From contig NW_018408906.1 of the NCBI RefSeq assembly GCF_002113885.1, positions 594,890 through 658,889 on the forward strand: a stretch of 64,000 nucleotides of DNA, in the 5' to 3' direction. Shown one piece after another: positions 3,001 through 51,613 of this stretch. The notes under the pieces are model-generated. The model worked only from the letters and a program-made list of their open reading frames with translations. It did not search any database and was not told the DNA's origin. Every line of letters begins with the position of its first letter. The stretch's first letter is position 1. This DNA comes from Mizuhopecten yessoensis (Eukaryota). The translations under genes and the position numbers were made by a program.

Positions 3001-4569
3001 TGCGTGATTTGTGGCTTGACTTTCTTTGTCCGTAATTTACACAAAAAAAATATGGGTTAATTGCCTCGTCTTGTGTGCCACGTCACACATCCTGTGACCT
3101 CTTAACCTCATTAACTACAAATGACATGGCTAGGGTTTTAAATCTATTATGTTTTAAAAGTCATTAGTACCCATAAGAGTGGTAATTTTAACTAATACCC
3201 TTCACTCCAGGCACCATGTTACAAATTAAGATTTAATTATGTAATTTTCTTGATGGAGTATGTCATAATTTCATTTTTTGTGTAAACAGAGACTTAAATT
3301 ATCACCGACTGACATATAATTAAAAATTCAAATAACTAATTTTCTAATTAAAGTGAATTAAGTAGTAGACAACATTTCAGTGTGTCCAGAAAGAAGAATG
3401 ATTCGCTAAATCATTTCCATAGCTTTGTCTGTTAAATAGATAAATAATGAAACGATAAAAACTTTTTTTTTCAACATTCTTTCAAATGTTTGCTAATTTG
3501 TTTACATGTGCCACCTGCCTCGGTCAATTAATAAACGGAAGTTTAACAACATGTCTTTCCATAGCAATTGCAAATATATAAGTTGGAAAAGATGTTTGAT
3601 AAATGAAATATTCAACTTGTCAAAATAACGAAGAAAATATTATTACTTCAATTTGTGTCTTTATATCGAAATGATACATTAATTGTTCCAGATTTTTTGC
3701 GACCCAATGTCTTTGTAAGGATGAAGCAAAGGCAATGAGTAAATCAGTTTGACAGATTGATTTACTTAAAAATATATACATTTATATATATTATTAATAT
3801 AGTAATATTACTTTTATATAAAGGTATCAAATTCATATTATATATAATTATATATATTATATATAGATACACCATAGTTTCAACACAGTATTTTCCATAA
3901 TATGCCATTGTAATTTGTAAACAAATATACAGAAAAATGGATGAATATAATGGCGACGTCCTATTAGTTTATTTTTGTTTTTGTTTTTATTGTTTTTTGT
4001 TTGTAACAAGAAAATGGAGGTCATTATAGATATCAGAACCAAGGTGGATGGTTTGATATTTACCCTCTAACAATAACGATCAATCGTACCAGGTTTGGGA
4101 GCTCGAGAGAAGATCATTAGGGAGGGTCATCAAGACTGAGATACTATAAAGTTTAACGTAGGTCAGGGGTCAAACAATTAGATTACGCGGAATAATATTG
4201 TAATACATATTGAATAACCACATGTACAGGCATTTTGGCGAAGATGTCTACTGATATACAACGAATGGGAACCGTTCAATAAGGTGCAATGTTTGTCGTC
4301 GTGTGGTTACAGGACAACGGGACATATGTTCGAAAGTTGACATCGTGGGCAATATCTGCAATTTGTTTTACACTTTTATCTCCAATTAGTGAAGTTGAAA
4401 TCAAGTTTCCTTGTTTTGAGAAAAAAGAGCTATGATCATCATAGGCTATACAATAAATGGTCCCATCGGATGAGTGTTCGTATTAGACCAATATAGTATC
4501 AAACAGTTGTCCGAAGCAAAAGTGAATATGAAGCGCTGTTTTTTTCCCAGAAGAACTGACTAAGCGTAT

Positions 4570-4774
4570 ATTGATGTCTTTCTTGTTGTTTTGGTGTCTA
4601 CTCGGTTTCCCTTGATATGTTTCCTTTATATTTGGTATCTCCACAGTTCCTGTTATTGTCTTTCTTTTAGTTTTGGCGTCTCTTCAGTTTATAAGGTTGT
4701 CTTCCCTTCTGTTTCAGTTTTGTTGTCTCTTCAGTAACCGTTGTTGCCTTTTGTTTTATTTTGGTGTCTCCTCA
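4570..4774 (-). repeat. Degenerate ~41-bp tandem units, reverse complement of the 62.8-63.6 kb array
   Basis: About 5 units such as GTTTTGGTGTCTCCTCA and TTGGCGTCTCTTCAGTT, matching the reverse complement of AACAGGAACTGAGGAGACACCAAAAC. The array ends abruptly where the SINE starts at 4775. Confidence 0.75.
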
Positions 4775-5379
4775 CCCCTGTATGTGGGGATCGGGAAAAG
4801 AATACACCCACAGTTACCCACGGCATGTATCGTAGGAGGCGACTAAAGTGTGAACCCCCCTGCAGAATTGGGAATTTGCTTTGGTGTCCTCTATTTAGGG
4901 ACACAAAAGCGACCACATTAAATCTGCTGCGCAAACTGCAATATTATGGATCTTTGTTTTTTTCTACTTCTAACTACCTTATATTTCCTAGCGCCTTGCT
5001 TAGCAACACCTCATTTTTGGCTTTAATGTTGAACGTTCGACCAGGTGAGGAAGGCAATGGGTTCTGTCCCCAGGCCGGAACATACCAAAGTCCTTAGAAA
5101 TGGTAGTTGTTATTCCCTGCTTAACTTTCAGCATAAAGGGGAATGGCAACAACTGGTTCACCCGTTGCTATTATAATGTGACCGGGCGGAACGATGTGCA
5201 TGGTTCCTTCGGCATGGTATTTCATTGAGATAGCAATATAAGTCGGTATCATATCCGCGCTATCACAAGGAGGCAAGCACACCAACATACCCTGTCTTCT
5301 GCACACACACGCACAAGCACGCATACATTACACACATGGAGGCAGATCTTTAAATGATCTTAGCTGTTAATAGGACGTT
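4775..5379 (+). mobile_element. Composite SINE copy 1: structured 5' module, tRNA-derived head, Meta/MESC-type domain and LINE-like tail
   Basis: Aligns by eye with 44633-45905 and with the reverse complement of 8307-8658. A-box-like TGGCTTTAATGTTG near 5018 and B-box-like GGGTTCTGTCCCC at 5059. Meta-like ATACCAAAGTCCTTAGAAATGGTAG...CCCTGCTTAAC..TCAGCAT and ATAATGTGACCGGG. Tail TAAATGATCTTAGCTGTTAATAGGACGTT. Confidence 0.85.
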
Positions 5380-5394
5380 CAGAAACTGTTCCAC

Positions 5395-5640
5395 GGTCAA
5401 TACACAAGGACAAAATATTGACACTGACACGAAAAAAACAGCAGGAAGAGACGCGACACCAAAATAATAGGTATGCTCTCACAAACCCTCACACAAAAGG
5501 ACATGAAAGAATATTCAGCTTGGTCAAATAGCTTCCTCTGTCACATCGTCAGTACATAAGGGCATAACAGGAAATGAGGCGACATATCAAAACAAAAGGT
5601 AAACTAAACAAGAAATCCGGGTAGGAAACGACTATTCTTT
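5395..5640 (+). repeat. Decayed copy of the element carrying the 41-bp units
   Basis: GTCAATACACAAGGACAAAA resembles GTCAACACACAAGGTCTAAAA at ~62790. It is followed by unit-like AACAGGAAATGAGGCGACATATCAAAACAAAAGG. Confidence 0.4.
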
Positions 5641-5848: not shown

Positions 5849-8306
5849 TTCGAAGCCTATTTCGAAATTTTGGTAATTCAATTTTAAACTTAATTGACAC
5901 AACAGGTGTGTTTTACTATGTATGTTGATATGAAATATTTTTGAAATTGATTAAGCCTCGGTGACAGTTTATGAGGCGAATTTAGCAGTCTAATATGCAT
6001 TCGAACGATTTAAATATTTCGCATTTATTTAGTCACTTTGTTTCTTACTAAGGAACGGGAATACATTTCGAATCAATTTCGTTTAAGTTGATGATTAAAC
6101 TCGAGAATATTTTCGCGTTGAATAATTGGTTATATAAATATCATTATGCCATTCTATTACCACCGCAGACATTTGAAGATAACAGGTTTTTTTTTATTTA
6201 TTTGTGAAATCGGCGTACTTTAGTGGAAACAGGCGTCATTTTTGGACCTCATTAAAAACGGGTAAACTTATTAAATTTGGTACGGTATACAAAACCTTTA
6301 TACACTTGAAACGATTAAGTCTCATTAAAGATCTATTTAGAAACCTATTTTCTTAGGGAAATGGTGTCCTTTTACTAATTATGGGAAATTTGCTAACTTT
6401 AAATTGACTTTTTAGTACATATAATGGTTTGATCTGACGGTAAACTCACACGAAAGTCCATAAATTAGTTTTAAGACAAGTAAACGTACAGAGATACAAG
6501 GGTAATTTAATTTTGTTTATTTTAAAATTTCTTTAATAAGAAATTTGAGTAAGATTGATATCATGATTAAAATCATTTACATTCTAGACCAAAACTCTCT
6601 GATTCATCCCACATGTAATATTACGTTTTCACACCGATATCAATACACAAATCAATCAAACTCATCGATAATCTGTCAAGGTTTTCAAGATATCAACAGA
6701 CAGACGTCTTTGAATCCTGTGTGAAAATCCTGTAATATCATCGCCGGCGAAAAGAATCAAGATACCCCCAAGGAACTGTTTATGCAATACATTATGTTTT
6801 GCTTTGAATGTTTGAAGGTGATCACATGTATTGGTAATCAGATTTTGTTATCTATAAATTTGAAAATACTTTCATTAAAGTTTTCCCTAGGTTCGATCCT
6901 TTATTTTTTTGAGATAGATATTTGACGATTATTGGTAACAAGAGTATTATTATTCAAAAAGGTGTGTTGGTGTGTGTCTGAGACACTTACGCAGATACGC
7001 TACCTTTTTCGTAATTTCACGTTTGTTTGAAGAAAAGATGATGTTTGATAATCCTCAAAAAGTAGAACTGATTGTAATTATACTGAGCAAATGAAAAGAC
7101 TGTTTTGTATTAAATACAGCCAAAGTTAAAGCCCGTCCTCGTGTGACCTTGGCGGGTACGAGGAAGTGTTTCAAGAACATACTTAGAAAACAGGTTTAAG
7201 GTGCAGTGTAGTTCATTTCAGGCATATCGTATCTTTTACCAATTTTTATTTTAGATGCAATCACTTTTGTTCTTCCTTAAATTATACTCATATCTTCTTA
7301 ATGTAGATTGCATGTTCGTACATGTATGTCTAAGAAGGATTCCTCTTTCAATTAAAACCAGAGAAAAAACCGACAATACAGTGTTTGTACCTTAGAGGCA
7401 ATAAAGTCAATTGGTATATTGACAAGAAAGCTATAAATCGAAATTGCCTTATCTTAAAAAGTCATTCAGTACTGTTTCAACTACCTAGTCAGCAGACGAG
7501 ACACTATCAGCCGGCGTATGTACTCGTTATCATCAAAAACAATTGAATGATGTTTCACCATAAATCTTTACAATCGGAACGTCGCTATGACATATTGTAT
7601 CTGGACTTCTTTGTACACATGTAAAATATACATGGATATGCGAAATCAATTTATCAAAACGGAGGGAAAATTATTCTTCAAAACCTGGAAATAAATTGAT
7701 TGTAGTATTTTCGAAGCCACAACGGACGTCGAAGATTTGATTTTAATTACAGATGAAAGGGGATTATTATGACGTCGATTTTTAAGATAAGGCTTCGAAA
7801 AAGGTACTCGTGTACATGTTAAAACAAGGAAACTGGCTGTCTGAGTTTAGTCATATTGTGTTTCATTAGAATCACTGTATTAGCAGAATCACGGAAAATA
7901 TACCTGTTTGAGCTTCAGAAAGGACACAGACTTTTCCAGGAGAAAGATCATGTTCTTTCTAAAGGAAATTATGAACTGCAAAACGATTAATGACATTTGC
8001 AAAATAATTGCTCTGTCGTGTTATTTACGTATGAATGAAAGACTTCCATTTCTAATATCGGCCGAATAAGAATTTCAATAAAAAAAAGAATTATTGTTTT
8101 TGTATATATCTTTGTAATACATAAAACATATTCATATGTGTACCTCCCATTTGAAAATGCGTGTTATTTGTTTGAAAATGGTACAAATTACAAAAACTTT
8201 AGGTAATTTCAGGGAAAGAAAAACAAACCATTGGTTATTTATCGTGTTACGTAGCTTTTCGGTTTACAAACGTAGTTGTGTAAGTAGGCATAAATTGAAC
8301 TTGAAG

Positions 8307-8658
8307 TTTGGTTTGGGTTTATTTGTATCATCAGCTATGGTCATTTAAGGACGTGCCTCAATGTGTGTATCTGTGCATGTATGTATGTGTGGTGGAGGCA
8401 GGGTATGTTGGTGTGTTTGCCTCCTTGTGATAGTGTGGATCTGATGCCGACACTAGAGTGCTACCTCACTGAAATATTCCACCCGGTCACATTATACTAA
8501 TAACGAGTAAACCAGTTGTTGCCATTGGCCTAAATGCTGAACGTTAAGCAGGGCATAACATCTACCATTTTAAAGAACTTTGGTGGTCCATGGCATGGGA
8601 ACAGAACCCGTTGTCTGTCTTCACTTTGGTGAACATTCATCACTAAGGCAAAACGTGA
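8307..8658 (-). mobile_element. Meta-type tRNA SINE of the same family as 4775-5379, lacking the 5' module
   Basis: The reverse complement matches ~5010-5379: GGGTTCTGTTCCC, AAAATGGTAG, CCCTGCTTAACGTTCAGCAT, ATAATGTGACCGGGTGG, CTATCACAAGGAGGCAAACACACCAACATACCCTG, and a tail ending in an AAACC-type repeat. Confidence 0.85.
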
Positions 8659-42691: not shown

Positions 42692-44632
42692 TGCGCTGTA
42701 CTTACATGGGAGTTAACGCAGAAAGTATGGGTTTAAAAATCATAAATAGTCTTCTCTGCATATTTGAGACCAAGACTCAACCTGATGTCCACCACTACAT
42801 GATCGAATGAGGCGACTAATTAGACAGAATGGGAGAATGTGTATTTTTCCTCTCAGGATGTACGCTTTCCTGGTCAATGTATCATATACAATATCATTTT
42901 TTTTAGGGAACGAATTGGAATTGTCACAGTACAAAATGTTGCAGCTTCTACTTAAAATAAAATAATGCGATTGACAGGTTGTCACGAATTCGAATATTGA
43001 GGTGTATATTAATATGAAACTAAAAACAAGAAATATGATAATCATGGCCGTGAGGTCGCCAATGATATTCAAAATTGGTGAGAGAATTGATTAGACCTGA
43101 AGTAATATACGACACATGAGATGTATATACATGTGAAACTAAGCAGAGTATTATGTTCTAGATGTCGCTACCGGCCTTACTAAAAAGGTGAGAGAGTAAA
43201 ATAAAAAATTACAATTGAAGTTATATCCGACGTAAATGTGTAAATTTCATGAAAGAATGTTGAACTGTAAATACCCTTATAGAAGGGAGACTGGGTCATA
43301 TCAAGATATAGCTTAAGGAACGTATTTAATTAGGAACACCTGTGTGCCTCATCAGTATTTGAGATCTTCGGTTGATGTGAATATTTTCTTTATCTGCGGA
43401 TGATTTCTATCATAAAATAACTCGCATCGAAGAACTAGGGGTGTATTTCAATTGAAGGTAATTGCTCTATCCAACTCGCCCCAGATCCTTTTCACTCCTC
43501 GTCAACAAGTTGTTTATCATTCATCTTTCCACCAACATCATTACATCTCAAGGGATAAAAATAACGTCTCTTTATATAGCTCCAAGATAAAATATGTAGA
43601 GTTTTCAAACCGGAAGGTATCATACATGCTATCGCTGCCCGCGGGAAATAATTTTGGTCGGTAACATTTGAAATGACGCCTCGCTGATCATGGGTATTTT
43701 ATGGTACACCTCAGGACGCGATTCACACGATGACCTTCGCGATAATAATATGATTGTTTTCTATATCTTTAAATTATTCTCATTGTTTTATACGACGTAT
43801 AATCTAAAAGGAAAAACAATTTTGCCCATCCCGGAATACGGAGATATTGAAATATATTTGAATATGATTGAAATGCCGTTACGGTCACTTGGTTTTATAG
43901 TAACAGTTAGGTATGCACTGTATTTAACTGTTAGGTGCCGCTATCGTCAAATATGGCGCGGTATGTAGCCATCCTACACATGTACCATCCTAAGGCTAAG
44001 ATATACACAGCACTGGTTTTGAAATGATAACAGACCTGCTGTATATCATATGAAATCTATGATAAGAGTCCGTTCTTCAATTTTCATTTGAGCGAGCCAA
44101 TGACGAGCTAAAATGAAAACTGTGTGACTAGTTCCATAACTTTCGTATAATAAGGAATGGAGGAATCGAATATAGTTTTCATCATGTCATCAAGAATTCC
44201 ACTGTTTAAAAAAAAAAAAAATCCAACTTTTTATTTGCTCGATATCTATTTGCTTTAATGTCACAATATGATCTGAGAATTTCTTGATAACGTCGCTATA
44301 GGTTGTTTTAAAACTATTGTTTGTGCAAATTGCAACATGAATGTACGTACTGTTAGACCTGTCAATTAGAGCACTCCTGATGCCAATGCTGCCGTTCATA
44401 TTAGTCAGATTATTTTTAATTACACAGAATCAAGTCACATCAATACATGTTTGTATACATGTACAGTGGGGCCTAGTTAATATCTGTTTTACGCAGAGGT
44501 ACTGAGTGCACAGGTTCTGTTTACACAAATATGTATAAGTTAGGCCTTGTTAAAAGTGGGTTGATGTACTTCTCTAGATTCGATATTTAACTGTTATAGT
44601 ATATAAATAAAAAAATAATTGCATAACCTTGA

Positions 44633-45905
44633 CCCCCCTGCAGGTGGGGGATCGGGAAAAGAATACCCCTGCTATTACCCACTGCATGTATAGTAGGAGG
44701 CGACTAATGTAGGAACTCCTGCAGAATTGGGGATTTGCTTTGGTGTCCTCTATTTTGGGACACAAAAGCGACCACAATAAATCTGCTGCGCCCATTGTAA
44801 TATTTGGGATATTTATCTCTCTTTCTACTTCTAACTACCTTTTATTTCCTAGCACCTTTCTTGGCAACACCGGGACATACTGTAGTCCTTACTGGCAGTT
44901 GTTATTCCCTGCTTAACGTTCAGCATTTAGGGGAATGGCAACAACTGGTTCACCCGTTGTCAGTATAATGTGACCGGGCGGAATGCTGTGATTGGTGCCT
45001 TCGGCGTGGCATTTAAGGTCATATGAGTGTATTGTTAAACGGAAATAGGAAGTACATCCCAAGTTGAAAATCCAATGTAGGGAGACGGTATCATAATTTC
45101 CGCATATTCTAATGTTTAATATTAAACTGATGAATACTGTATGCTAATTATTGACAGAACATTGTGTTCTTTCAATATTAAAGTATTGCAAAGCAATCCA
45201 GGCCTTAATTCAGTTGTTTTTAAATCAATGAGTCACATGTGTCCATTTTTCTGTACTTCAGGAAACCGGCTACCTATTTCACTACTGTGAAGTTTTTCAA
45301 GAACGATAACGCTTGCATGCAATTACTATGTGTATATGGTTTTATTATAAAATGTCAATTTTTAATCGTTTATAGATGATTAATTTTACACAATTTCAGC
45401 ATTTATGAAATTGACATACATTAATGCAATACTAATCTATGTTATTATCATTTTTATTGACATTATTTTGCAAAATAAATGTGTGTTTCAATTATTTTTT
45501 ACATGAATTTCCATTTAAAATCCTTAACATTCTGACAACCTATTTTTTTTTTGTGGCAGAACATTTTCTTTACTTCAAAGCAATATAACTACAAAATTTG
45601 AATAAATTCTACTGAGAAATGGCGACACAATCTTATTACCTTAAGTGAGATATAGTAGCACTATAACGTCGGCTTCAGATCCGCGCTATCACAAGGAGGC
45701 AAGCACACCAATATACCCTGTCTGCTGCATACACATACGCAAGCACGCTTACATTACACACATGGAGGTACGTCCTTAACAGCTAATGTCATTTAAGGAC
45801 GTATTTTTCAAGGTCATGCTTGATTTGGTTGGGTTTAATTTTGTTTAACGTCCTATTAACAGCTAATGTCATTTAATAGGACGTTAAACAAAATTAAACC
45901 CAACC
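44633..45905 (+). mobile_element. Composite SINE copy 2: 5' module present, tRNA head deleted, split by a TTAA insertion, rearranged tail
   Basis: 44633-44872 matches 4775-5010. The sequence then jumps directly to GGGACATAC (equivalent to ~5077). It resumes after the insertion at 45645 with CCGCGCTATCACAAGGAGGCAAGCACACCAA. Confidence 0.85.
45017..45640. mobile_element. Non-autonomous Kolobok-like DNA transposon (624 bp)
   Basis: TTAA duplicated at 45013-45016 and 45641-45644. Termini GGTCATATGAGTGT and (reverse complement) GGTAATAAGATTGT. Removing it restores the SINE seen intact in copy 1. A TTAA TSD with 5'-RR ends is the Kolobok signature. Confidence 0.8.
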
Positions 45906-45930
45906 AAATCAAGCATTACCTTGAAAAATA
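45802..45930. repeat. 58-bp near-perfect inverted repeat with a 13-nt spacer
   Basis: 45802-45859 is the reverse complement of 45873-45930 with one mismatch. Confidence 0.93.
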
Positions 45931-47130: not shown

Positions 47131-50100
47131 TAGGTATATTCTCTCCCCAATGAACCTGTAGAGGTTTCAGTCTGAATGCCAGTATCCAACTGCATTACCG
47201 TATGAGGTGACTTTTGATAGACCCCCTACATAATCTGGGATATTTATTTTTCGTCGCTGTTGTAATAGTTCTTGTTCGTGGTGTCCCCTTAGACACCTCT
47301 GGTTATTCCGTTGTCAGAATAGTGAGCGTCGCAACTGTAAACAAGTTATGACAGTGTATAGTGTTCCTTTGGTTGGCACCATCACAACTAGACAGTGTCT
47401 TCATGTGATTATTCTCTTTTTCAAAGACGTTAAACCCCAAAACCAACACACTCCCGATACACATACTTTGGTTAGAGAAAATAAGCTAGATACGAGGAGG
47501 GCATGGTAATGACTCGGGAGTTAAACAACAAAATTCAATAATTTAAAAGAATATTGAAATACTGTTGCAATATATTGTTAAGAAAGGAATAACTAACATC
47601 AAGTTATTTTTTCCTTGTATATAGCATAACCGCTCTGTTTCTCGACTCTCGACTAAAACTGATGACTTTATAAAGCTCGGTTTTTTAAATCTTAAATGAT
47701 AAATTTCTCAGATATCCTGATTTTTTATTTTTCAGTTTTATAAACTTTAAATTAACAAAACAAAATTTTGGTATTTATAGAATATCGATTTTTATTGTTT
47801 ATTTATGCAGTTTGAATGGGGTTAGAACTACTAACATACAGCTGTAAATGTTAACATTTTCAGTTTTAAAGTAACAGACGCCACTGTGGTGTTAAATTGA
47901 TGCCGAATTTTTAGAACTACCTGCTCATTTTTTAAGACAACATGAACCTCAGTGTAGACTACATGAATTAGTATGTAGAAAAAAAAATCATGTTAGCGCA
48001 TGAATTCATGGGCAAATTGATTTTGCATAGTGTGACGATTGGTCGAAATAATTTATAGAGAATTAAAAAGAAATCTGGTAACATTTATCTGCACCGGAAA
48101 TATTGAATGCAAGATATGTTTCAAGATAAAAAAAATATCCGCCAGAACCGGTTTCCTTGGCATTGGCCTTGTTGCCTTATCAGGTATATTCTATGTCATT
48201 AGTAGTAATGATTCATTTTTTGTGTGTGTTTAACATATTGATATCAGTATTTAAAACGAACACTGACCCTTACACAGTAAGTCTAACGTCTAATCACAAG
48301 TATCTGTAAAAAAAAAGAGAAGAACTTTGACTTTTCAAGGTAATTTCAGTTGTGAATTTCAACTAATTAAGTCATAAGTAATTAAATATATACCTGTAGC
48401 CATTGTTATGCATTATTTATAGGTACGTTAATGAATCTAAATGCCGAGGATTGTATTCGAGGTTCTGTCAACGAAAACAATCCGGTGGTGTTATTTATCA
48501 TGGTTCCTTGAAAATGAGCTATTCTGATACGTTGGTCTTGACACCATGTCTATTGTGTACGTTTGAACTAAACGGTCTTTTAAGGGATAATTACATGAAC
48601 ACGGGTGAACAGGTACATGGCCGTTAAAAACAGAATTCCTTAAAGGTACCTGACGATTCTTGACGATAGGGTCTTTACGAAAACGAAATACCTTAAAGTC
48701 CATACCGTCTATATTGATATACTTCTGTGAAATTCTGTTGGTCGTGGCTGCCAATGTCCAGGAGGCTAAGTACTGCTTACTTGAATTAAAAGATTAACAT
48801 ATATGTTTGTCAGAACTTTGGACATATTTGGCAAAAAGAAACATATGGGGCATACAAAATGATAAACAAATATAACGATATTTTTTTTGATTTTTTTTTG
48901 GATTTTTTTACTATTAATGCCTCAAATTTTAAAATTCCTTTTCTTGAAATTATTGTAGATGTATGCTGACGATACTTCTTAACCTTTAATGTCCGAAGGT
49001 CATGGCGCGGAATAGATCACTGGGACGAAATTCCTATGAACCACATCGACTTTGCCAGTGTTTTTGGTAGAGAACGCAAAGGGAATGATTCCGGGATCGA
49101 ATTACTACAAGACAACATGATCAAGGACCAACAAAGCACTGAGCCTACCAGGTCACTGCCGACAATGGCGAACTGTGTTTAACCATAGGCTCAGCAGATC
49201 ACACATAGGAGTAAAGACCATTCCGAGTGCATCTCCTCTTTTATGTTGCAACATAATCTCTGATCGAGTGCAGTTCATCCCCATTGCGGCTGATGACCAG
49301 TGGCTGGTATCGTTAAGGAAATGGAACATCACAGTAGCCGTACTATATTCACTCGCCCTGTATGTAAAAACATAGACTGAAGTTAAAAGATCGATGAAGT
49401 TCAAAGGGTCGTTCTTAGACGTGAAAAAAATACATGGACGGACACAAATACTGAAAGAACTGTTAAACCTGTTTTGTTAATTTCTGATTTAAAAGTGATT
49501 GTTTTTAATTGATTTTGGGGATGATATGTCTTTAATGAAATATTTTTTTTCTTAAAAATCATGCTTAAAAGCATCAAAACATTACTGATGTTCACATCAC
49601 ACTACAACATATTTTGGTGATTTGATATTTTTTAATACGGTTTCCTCTAATAATATATGAATAAATACAAGGTTTTCACCGTTTTATTGCACCTCTGTTC
49701 GTGGTGCATTGACTCTTCTGAGCTGTAAAACAAAACGTCACTAGCTACCTTTTAGAACCGCTTAATCGTTAAATTCATTTTTGACTTGACATCCAACAGT
49801 TAAACTTTCGTCATTCTCTGTTGTAATTTCGTGTCATATGCCAATATAGCTATTAATTACACTTTTTAGTCATAAACGAATATATATATCTTTTACGAGT
49901 GGCTTCCTCTAATACGCAATCGTTTAATTTCACACGAATGTGTCGTCATTTTGCGCCGCTCGCCAATAGTGCAGTATAACAGCAAAGTCATTTCCCCGTT
50001 ATTCTTGAACTTCAATGTGTACTTCGATATATAACTTTTGTTTTAATGTCAAAAGTACTACGTTTAAGAGAATGACTTCCCTCAGAACTCGTCGTCTGAC

Positions 50101-51073: not shown

Positions 51074-51613
51074 ACATTGTTACGTCAAATGGCCTGCTTC
51101 ATCCCACAGCATGGTAGGACGGAGAAACCAATATCGGGTTTTATTTTCAGAATTGTGTGTCTTTTGCTAGGTTCCCTGAATGTACCGTAGAGTGACGACA
51201 GACTTTAGTGAAAATTGACCATGTCTATATCATATTAAATGGCCATACTGTATCATTTAAATAAGGTCTCCTCCAAATTTGGCTCACACCACATTTTGGC
51301 ACTGTCATATGAAGGACATTCTCTTGTAAATTTATTGAATCATTCAGGAAACCATCGTTGAAAGAAACTCTTCTTTGAAGCATCATACTAGAGAGAATGC
51401 ATGGACCTGGTTTACTCGACTACATGATCGTAAGAGGCGAATAATGTACTGACTTGAACAGTATTTTATGTCCTCTTTCAAGTGGCAATGGAGAAAAAGC
51501 TTGATATGGCACCTTTGCAGTACTTAAGATATTTTCCTCTACTTCATATATTTTCGTTCTTGATATATCTGTCGTTCATCATCACTTGCTTACTCTTACT
51601 ATATATATAGTAA

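Follow-up and report, generated by a model that had tools for sequence, protein, structure and literature searches.

Within a 64,000-nucleotide stretch of Mizuhopecten yessoensis DNA (contig NW_018408906.1, positions 594,890 to 658,889; the whole stretch is here called the window) lies a copy of a SINE family with a unit of about 635 bp. This copy, copy 1, has 90.8% identity to the family consensus, with 10.6% divergence in the full-length alignment, and its last ~25 bp, the terminal ATTAAA and (AAACC)n, are missing or diverged 3′ of position 5379. Its extent and parts, in window coordinates, are:

4773 to 5379, plus strand: copy 1 of the ~635-bp SINE family, consensus positions 1–610
4773 to 4855, plus strand: head, consensus 1–82, with first bases CACCCCTGCAGG; the best conserved part between subfamilies
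4856 to 4947, plus strand: extra segment, consensus 83–175, with two hairpin-like inverted repeats
4948 to 5010, plus strand: C/T-rich spacer, consensus 176–240, which includes a TTTT run
5011 to 5076, plus strand: tRNA-like region, consensus 241–305, with A-box-like TGGCTTTAATGTTG, B-box-like GGTTCTGTCCC (5060–5070) and a second TTTT run at its start
5077 to 5171, plus strand: core, placed where the published layout (PMC4758252) has its MESC/Meta domain, the match being by position only
5341 to 5379, plus strand: stem-loop of the tail (ACGTCCT...AGGACGT in the consensus), common to a canonical tRNA SINE family

By manual count 47 of the 65 bases at consensus 176–240 are C or T, and it is this C/T-rich stretch that separates the head and extra segment from the tRNA-like region. 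Neither ARAGORN nor Rfam at gathering thresholds gave a match within the window, Pfam returned nothing useful for four of its open reading frames, and no tandem array was found by TRF around copy 1. The DNA 5′ of copy 1 (4560–4770) consists of loosely repeated T-rich units containing TTTTGGTGTCT, and an inverted match to them, GACACCAAAA, is present 3′ of it at 5440–5470; copy 1 may be located inside an older inverted-repeat element.

Further copies, fragments and relics are present elsewhere in the window:

8306 to 8658, minus strand: copy 3, which starts at consensus 241, has 77% identity and ends in AAACC-type repeats
42756 to 42830, plus strand: old and decayed head-like relic, not continued by the body of the SINE
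44633 to 45779, plus strand: copy 2, with consensus 3–240 of the module (94%), a deletion of 241–304, then 305–455, a nested repeat and 461–584
45770 to 45908, strand not assigned: three short tail fragments, consensus 575–633, in inverted orientation directly 3′ of copy 2
47143 to 47260, plus strand: old head-like relic of O-type (see below), with the second hairpin present
51360 to 51470, plus strand: old head-like relic, a head-profile match
60784 to 60912, minus strand: 129-bp 3′ fragment of the family, consensus 504–632, 80.6% identity

An earlier note, made from the letters of the window, had proposed that copies 1 and 2 share a module of ~240 bp upstream of the tRNA-like head, and both alignment and the family consensus bear this out. 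Its account of copy 2, in which the tRNA head was lost at a CC microhomology, is right as far as it goes: consensus 241–304 is missing, with CC on either side of the break, and the copy is also interrupted by a nested 638-bp repeat (45018–45655). The deletion junction is private to copy 2, occurring once genome-wide at ≤2 mismatches, so the head-less copies do not form the multi-copy subfamily that the note had envisaged. For the nested repeat itself, 1700 candidate sites were flagged in a first search pass, and 39 of 39 other scored matches cover it from its first base to ~628 at 90–94% identity. The inverted tail fragments make up a small palindromic structure beside copy 2. Copy 3, in which the B-box-like string reads GGTTCTGTTCC (minus strand, near 8600), lacks a clear target-site duplication. 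The matches retrieved with it, all from query base 8, were considered as an older family beginning with its tRNA head and are mostly module-bearing or randomly truncated copies; copy 3 is a single older copy and there is no sign of a head-first subfamily.

The family is a large one. When used alone against the source genome, the module (4775–5010) had 3319 candidate sites in the first pass, and the 40 of these that were scored are 85–88% identical to it; the body alone (5011–5379) had 5438, of which 40 were likewise scored. In all 29 non-self loci that were fetched with the module it leads into the same SINE sequence, most of them reaching the 3′ end; the loci retrieved with the body reach different distances upstream into the module. 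Sharing of the module is far beyond chance. The family consensus, consA, is 635 bp long and was derived from 28 full-length copies, 27 that diverge from it by 4.7–9.1% and the more divergent copy 1; it begins with CACCCCTGCAGG and ends in ...AATAGGACGTTAAACAAAATTAAACC(AAACC)n. An exact match to AATTAAAC, the string with the polyA-type hexamer, is present in 31 of 63 copies, ATTAAA being followed by the (AAACC)n repeats.

Target-site duplications of 9–15 bp, directly 5′ of base 1 and 3′ of the tail repeats, were recognized under strict criteria in 17 of 42 full-length copies versus 1 of 42 when flanks were mismatched. In the truncated set, which includes a few tail-only fragments, 3 of 31 pass the same test. 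The 3′ end of copies is constant and their 5′ end variable. Such duplications, and 5′ truncation of variable extent, are hallmarks of LINE-mediated retroposition.

Where the copied RNA begins was deduced from the 5′ starts in two samples collected independently of the module, 29 loci found with the body and 29 found with copy 3 (the starts at loci L058 and L065 being assigned by hand). Starts at consensus ≤5 are seen in 14 of the former and 8 of the latter (22/58 together), and starts at consensus 230–250 in none of either 29; the unit does not start at the tRNA-like head. Two other copies start at 258 and 275, and the rest are scattered over 9–228 with a mild excess near 203–218. Among the copies found with the module, 27 of 28 start at consensus 1–5. 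The distribution in the two unbiased samples shows that the RNA copied back into the genome begins at base 1 of the head and not in the tRNA-like part, and the module belongs to the family as its 5′ portion, with which the retroposed unit begins. The common start point that had been claimed for copies 1 and 2 is thus real, in that full-length copies with target-site duplications start at base 1 of the module, but its placing has to be shifted: the element starts at 4773, with CACCCCTGCAGG, not at 4775.

The tRNA-like region has an odd B box. Of 79 copies, 42 have exactly GGTTCTGTCCC, 63 have its TTCTG core and none has the canonical GGTTCGANNCC; 12 of 22 older, more diverged copies have exact GGTTCTGT, and again none has the canonical box. 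Since the odd box is also found in the older copies, it is an old, common state rather than the product of recent decay, and the suggestion that the defect is family-wide is extended to older subfamilies. The opposite finding, most young copies starting at the tRNA head with an intact B box, would have told against the earlier note; starts there number 0 of 58 and canonical boxes 0 of 79. ARAGORN calls the tRNA-like region only at its loosest setting, and the neighbouring canonical SINE family one step earlier. Pairings like those of a D arm and a T arm can be seen by eye in the consensus. Rfam at E up to 10, applied to two good copies (L045, L052), gave no tRNA, small-RNA or ribozyme family inside the element. 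The identity between subfamilies is 79.5% for the tRNA-like region versus 81.9% for the core, and with the one about as conserved as the other, the description of the tRNA part as vestigial is unsupported by that measure.

The head is the best conserved region between diverged subfamilies, with 86.9% identity versus 73–82% elsewhere in a comparison of only 4 copies. A 15-mer from its core, TCGTAAGAGGCGACT (the non-A form), has 2546 exact matches in the genome versus 1 for the reversed control, from which it follows that head-bearing elements far outnumber this one family; they are among the commonest repeats of the genome. The family of copy 1, here A-type, has the extra segment (consensus 83–175). 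Old copies with a divergent head, O-type, have the same downstream order and keep the extra segment (L080, L062 and the relic at window 47143). A shorter layout without the extra segment, B-type, has the head joined to consensus 171–635 (L059, L081). Head, spacer and odd B box are common to the older subfamilies, and this, together with the number of head core 15-mers, does not accord with a recent date for the promoter swap that the earlier note had suggested: the design is old. A stretch 5′ of the old module copy in L062 was considered as a true tRNA head and rejected, being the end of an unrelated young repeat. That high-copy repeat (L062:1080–1213), which adjoins the old module copy, has a B-box-like end, and 39 of 39 other matches to it are 95–98% identical, all ending at ...GGCTCGAACCCAC.

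The last ~55 bp of the unit, with the stem ACGTCCT/AGGACGT, are also the end of a canonical tRNA SINE whose A and B boxes are good, which suggests that the two have a partner LINE in common. The copies of it are:

L045:1190–1403, L058:1060–1345, L073:2298–2520 (minus strand) and L090:2690–2906: canonical tRNA SINE of ~220 bp, with an internal T4–T7 run and clear A and B boxes

Three routes to a LINE with the head or the tail were followed. Tail-only fragments with their upstream DNA led to another family of SINEs and to truncated copies, but to no open reading frame, a head profile run over the DNA examined gave old relics only, and the open reading frames beside relics gave none that was useful. 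A metagenome pattern scan with the head gave at least 120 loci; among the matches listed, at most ~77 bases aligned, at 67% identity, and these are read as chance. A variant of the tail follows ACACGCATGCATCTTGCACACAGGGGAGGC at L069:677–761 and ends in (CAAA)n.

Four raw RNA-seq runs with the same organism label were placed, at ≥85% likeness, on L034:1060–2100, where an element occupies 1260–1895. Depth is 0 in the upstream flank and increases towards the 3′ end, with 8–58 in the head, 5–120 in the module, 70–1300 in the body and 500–1800 in the tail; it is equal for the two mate orientations. No pile-up of read starts or ends was found on the L034 element in the four runs, so transcription from the module, which the earlier note had inferred, left no direct sign there. 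Of the placed reads, 77–88% continue into unlike sequence. Several of the loose ends have one sharp consensus, which implies truncated copies within other transcripts, or sister families. The RNA-seq neither shows nor excludes a unit-length transcript; the family, 5–7% diverged from its consensus, may be silent. Two of the RNA runs have loose read ends at L034:1836 (143 in one, 576 in the other) whose consensus is the same 30 letters as in the L069 tail variant, so some copy of that variant is expressed. The downstream flank at L034:1900–2000 contains a short satellite-like repeat transcribed in all four runs, which is seen in the reads as joints that go back 21–59 letters and as inserts of 24–38 letters.

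An arrangement of this kind has been described. Matetovici et al. in 2016 reported LP (LINE promoter) SINEs with a MESC domain from pectinoid scallops, laid out as a head derived from a LINE 5′ UTR, a CT-rich spacer, a tRNA-derived region, a MESC/Meta core, a polyA signal and tail repeats (PMC4758252). According to that account, the opening ~68 bp of these scallop SINEs correspond to the 5′ UTR starts of Nimb-17_LMi, I-3_DR and RTE-9_CPB, an 88-bp CT-rich stretch follows the 68-bp head, the MESC central domain of ~95 bp comes after the tRNA part, and target-site duplications vary in size; that the 68-bp head is a possible promoter, possibly for Pol II, is put forward there as a hypothesis for which the authors call for experiments (PMC4758252). 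The complete Mizuhopecten element is given as absent from the 2016 data set (PMC4758252). In a literature search for the LP-SINE idea, PMC4758252 was the only relevant match. Nishihara et al. in 2016 consider MESC to be basically the Meta domain and describe a tail shared by bivalve Meta and V SINEs (PMC4824008). Martelossi et al. in 2024 link the tails of V and Meta SINEs with Nimb LINEs, in sections that leave MESC and LP-SINEs unmentioned (PMC11481361).

The element of copy 1 is probably a non-autonomous non-LTR retroposon of this pectinoid MESC-domain LP-SINE type, with its start set by the LINE-derived head. The unit would then consist, in order, of the conserved head of ~80 nt, a linker and C/T-rich spacer, a decayed tRNA-derived region, a conserved core, a CA-rich stretch and the ~55-nt stem-loop tail, which would precede ATTAAA and (AAACC)n. 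Box A/B promoters set the start of transcription only some 10–20 bp upstream of box A. By that rule tRNA-like boxes 240 bp downstream should be unable to set a start at base 1, and with these excluded as start setters it would have to be the head that defines the 5′ end. The head most likely serves as an internal promoter that came from the 5′ UTR of a LINE and may be read by Pol II, in line with the proposal of Matetovici et al. (PMC4758252). At the other end, the partner LINE would recognize the 3′ stem-loop and repeats, the stem-loop being the presumed handle for its reverse transcriptase, while the tRNA-like part may be a retained relic of an ancestral MESC/Meta SINE.

There are other ways in which a 5′ end can be made. 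HDV-like ribozymes define the 5′ ends of R2, RTE and L1Tc elements, and the head could similarly be an RNA-processing site (e.g. for self-cleavage) in longer host or read-through transcripts and contain no promoter. This is unlikely, but several features of the head and of the reads are in keeping with it. The 5′ end is very sharp in the module-found copies, and RNA reads are mostly within longer transcripts. The head of one copy folds somewhat better than shuffles (−38.4 kcal/mol, z = −2.14; 7 of 200 shuffles do as well). By eye, its first hairpin, CCCC/GGGG in A-type versus GTCCT/AGGGC in B-type, and a CCCAC/GTGGG helix have pairing that is kept between subfamilies through two-sided changes. 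The trypanosome Pr77 cited in PMC4758252 is a precedent. However, RNAalifold returned no consensus structure from an alignment of 9 heads, an alignment that shifts register between subfamilies, and no nested fold of the HDV type is seen by eye, bases 1–6 pairing with 14–18 in a simple hairpin. The lack of a match to an Rfam ribozyme family at E up to 10 in L045 and L052 also counts against such processing, though an undescribed ribozyme would be compatible with that result.

Which polymerase would read the element is the subject of clues that are weak both ways. The TTTT runs of consA at 209 and 245, and its ATTAAA at 618 before the repeats, favour Pol II. As evidence against Pol III the TTTT runs are weak, since an internal T4–T7 run is also present in the canonical tRNA SINE, and AATAAA at consensus 145, inside the module, is awkward for a Pol II transcript. 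It is quite unlikely that the element is still a Pol III one that starts at base 1 by means of box-like motifs in the head, or of an upstream type-3-like promoter at master copies, and reads through weak T4 runs. Box-like strings can be picked out by eye in the head, TGCAGGTGG near position 7 and GTGGGAACCCC near 76, but on the same reading, done with no statistics, they fit the box consensus poorly. The tolerance of the canonical tRNA SINE of this genome for an internal T4–T7 run is in favour of such read-through; nevertheless two T4 runs are in its path, no Rfam small-RNA family was found in the two good copies at E up to 10, and the head comes, reportedly, from LINE 5′ UTRs and not from a Pol III gene (PMC4758252).

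Far less probable is an internally deleted LINE, 5′ UTR plus 3′ UTR, with an accidental likeness to tRNA. The tRNA-like part is weak, and head and tail may both stem from Nimb-type LINEs (PMC4758252, PMC11481361), as this would have it. Against that, a tRNA-derived region and MESC/Meta core are aligned, in the published comparisons, between the scallop elements and head-less relatives of other molluscs (PMC4758252, PMC4824008), and the D-arm-like and T-arm-like pairings of the consensus also speak for a tRNA origin. The possibility raised in the earlier note, that the two module-bearing copies result from a single segmental duplication or a chance nested insertion, is refuted by the 3319 candidate sites for the module genome-wide and by copies with their own target-site duplications and unrelated flanks.

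A broader and rather speculative extension of the LINE-derived reading is that the ~80-nt head is a portable structured module which defines 5′ ends, working like Pr77 as an internal promoter for Pol II, as an RNA that cleaves itself, or in both ways, and which might have passed between LINEs and SINEs across animal phyla and now head many thousands of elements here. The UGCA palindromes in the loops of its first two hairpins might in addition serve for loop-loop pairing or RNA dimerization.

By definition, SINEs are Pol III elements whose heads come from small RNAs. A lineage driven by a 5′ end taken over from a LINE departs from this, and is relevant to the ways in which promoters are gained by non-autonomous elements. 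Such a departure was reported from scallops and other molluscs in 2016 (PMC4758252). The architecture seen here fits that description part by part, so the inference of the earlier note restates a published hypothesis: the reading of the head as LINE-derived is reasonable and sound, has been in print since 2016 (PMC4758252), and leaves the promoter role putative. What is added here is complete copies with target-site duplications, start statistics, a longer subfamily, a tail common to a canonical SINE and a negative look at RNA-seq; the question at issue is to which polymerase, or to which kind of RNA processing, the 5′ end is due.

The closest counterparts are the Cfa_MESC and Mye_MESC LP-SINEs, known here from their published description, which have the same order of parts, variable target-site duplications, 5′ truncation and the same LINE-promoter hypothesis (PMC4758252). 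As in these, the element here begins with the head, directly flanked by a target-site duplication of variable size (in 17 of 42). The unit in Chlamys farreri is 520 bp, with 68 + 88 bp before the tRNA part (PMC4758252), whereas here it is ~635 bp with ~240 bp before that part; the greater length is due to the extra segment at consensus 83–175, and the B-type layout is closer than the A-type to the published LP-SINE size (PMC4758252). In the MetaSINE superfamily (BivaMeta-SINE1 and others) the 3′ tail is shared with V SINEs (PMC4824008); here the tail is common to a canonical tRNA SINE, and the family differs from that superfamily in beginning 240 bp upstream of its tRNA-like part.

Sharing of a 5′ end between SINE and LINE families is also seen with SINEU and Tx1 LINEs (Kojima 2015, cited in PMC4758252). 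The shared piece in that case is U1/U2 snRNA, while the head here has no small-RNA match in Rfam. For Pr77 both promoter and ribozyme activity have reportedly been shown; the head here is a candidate only, and no sequence relation is claimed. Pr77 is 77 nt long and stands, like the head here, at the exact 5′ end, common to LINEs and their non-autonomous partners in the trypanosomatid pairs L1Tc/NARTc and ingi/RIME (cited in PMC4758252). In the 5S-plus-tRNA composite DeuSINEs (Nishihara et al. 2006, cited in PMC4758252) a second promoter module was likewise joined to the 5′ side of a tRNA-derived head and assumed its role, but the module added there was a Pol III gene (5S rRNA) and the one here is reportedly a piece of LINE 5′ UTR (PMC4758252).
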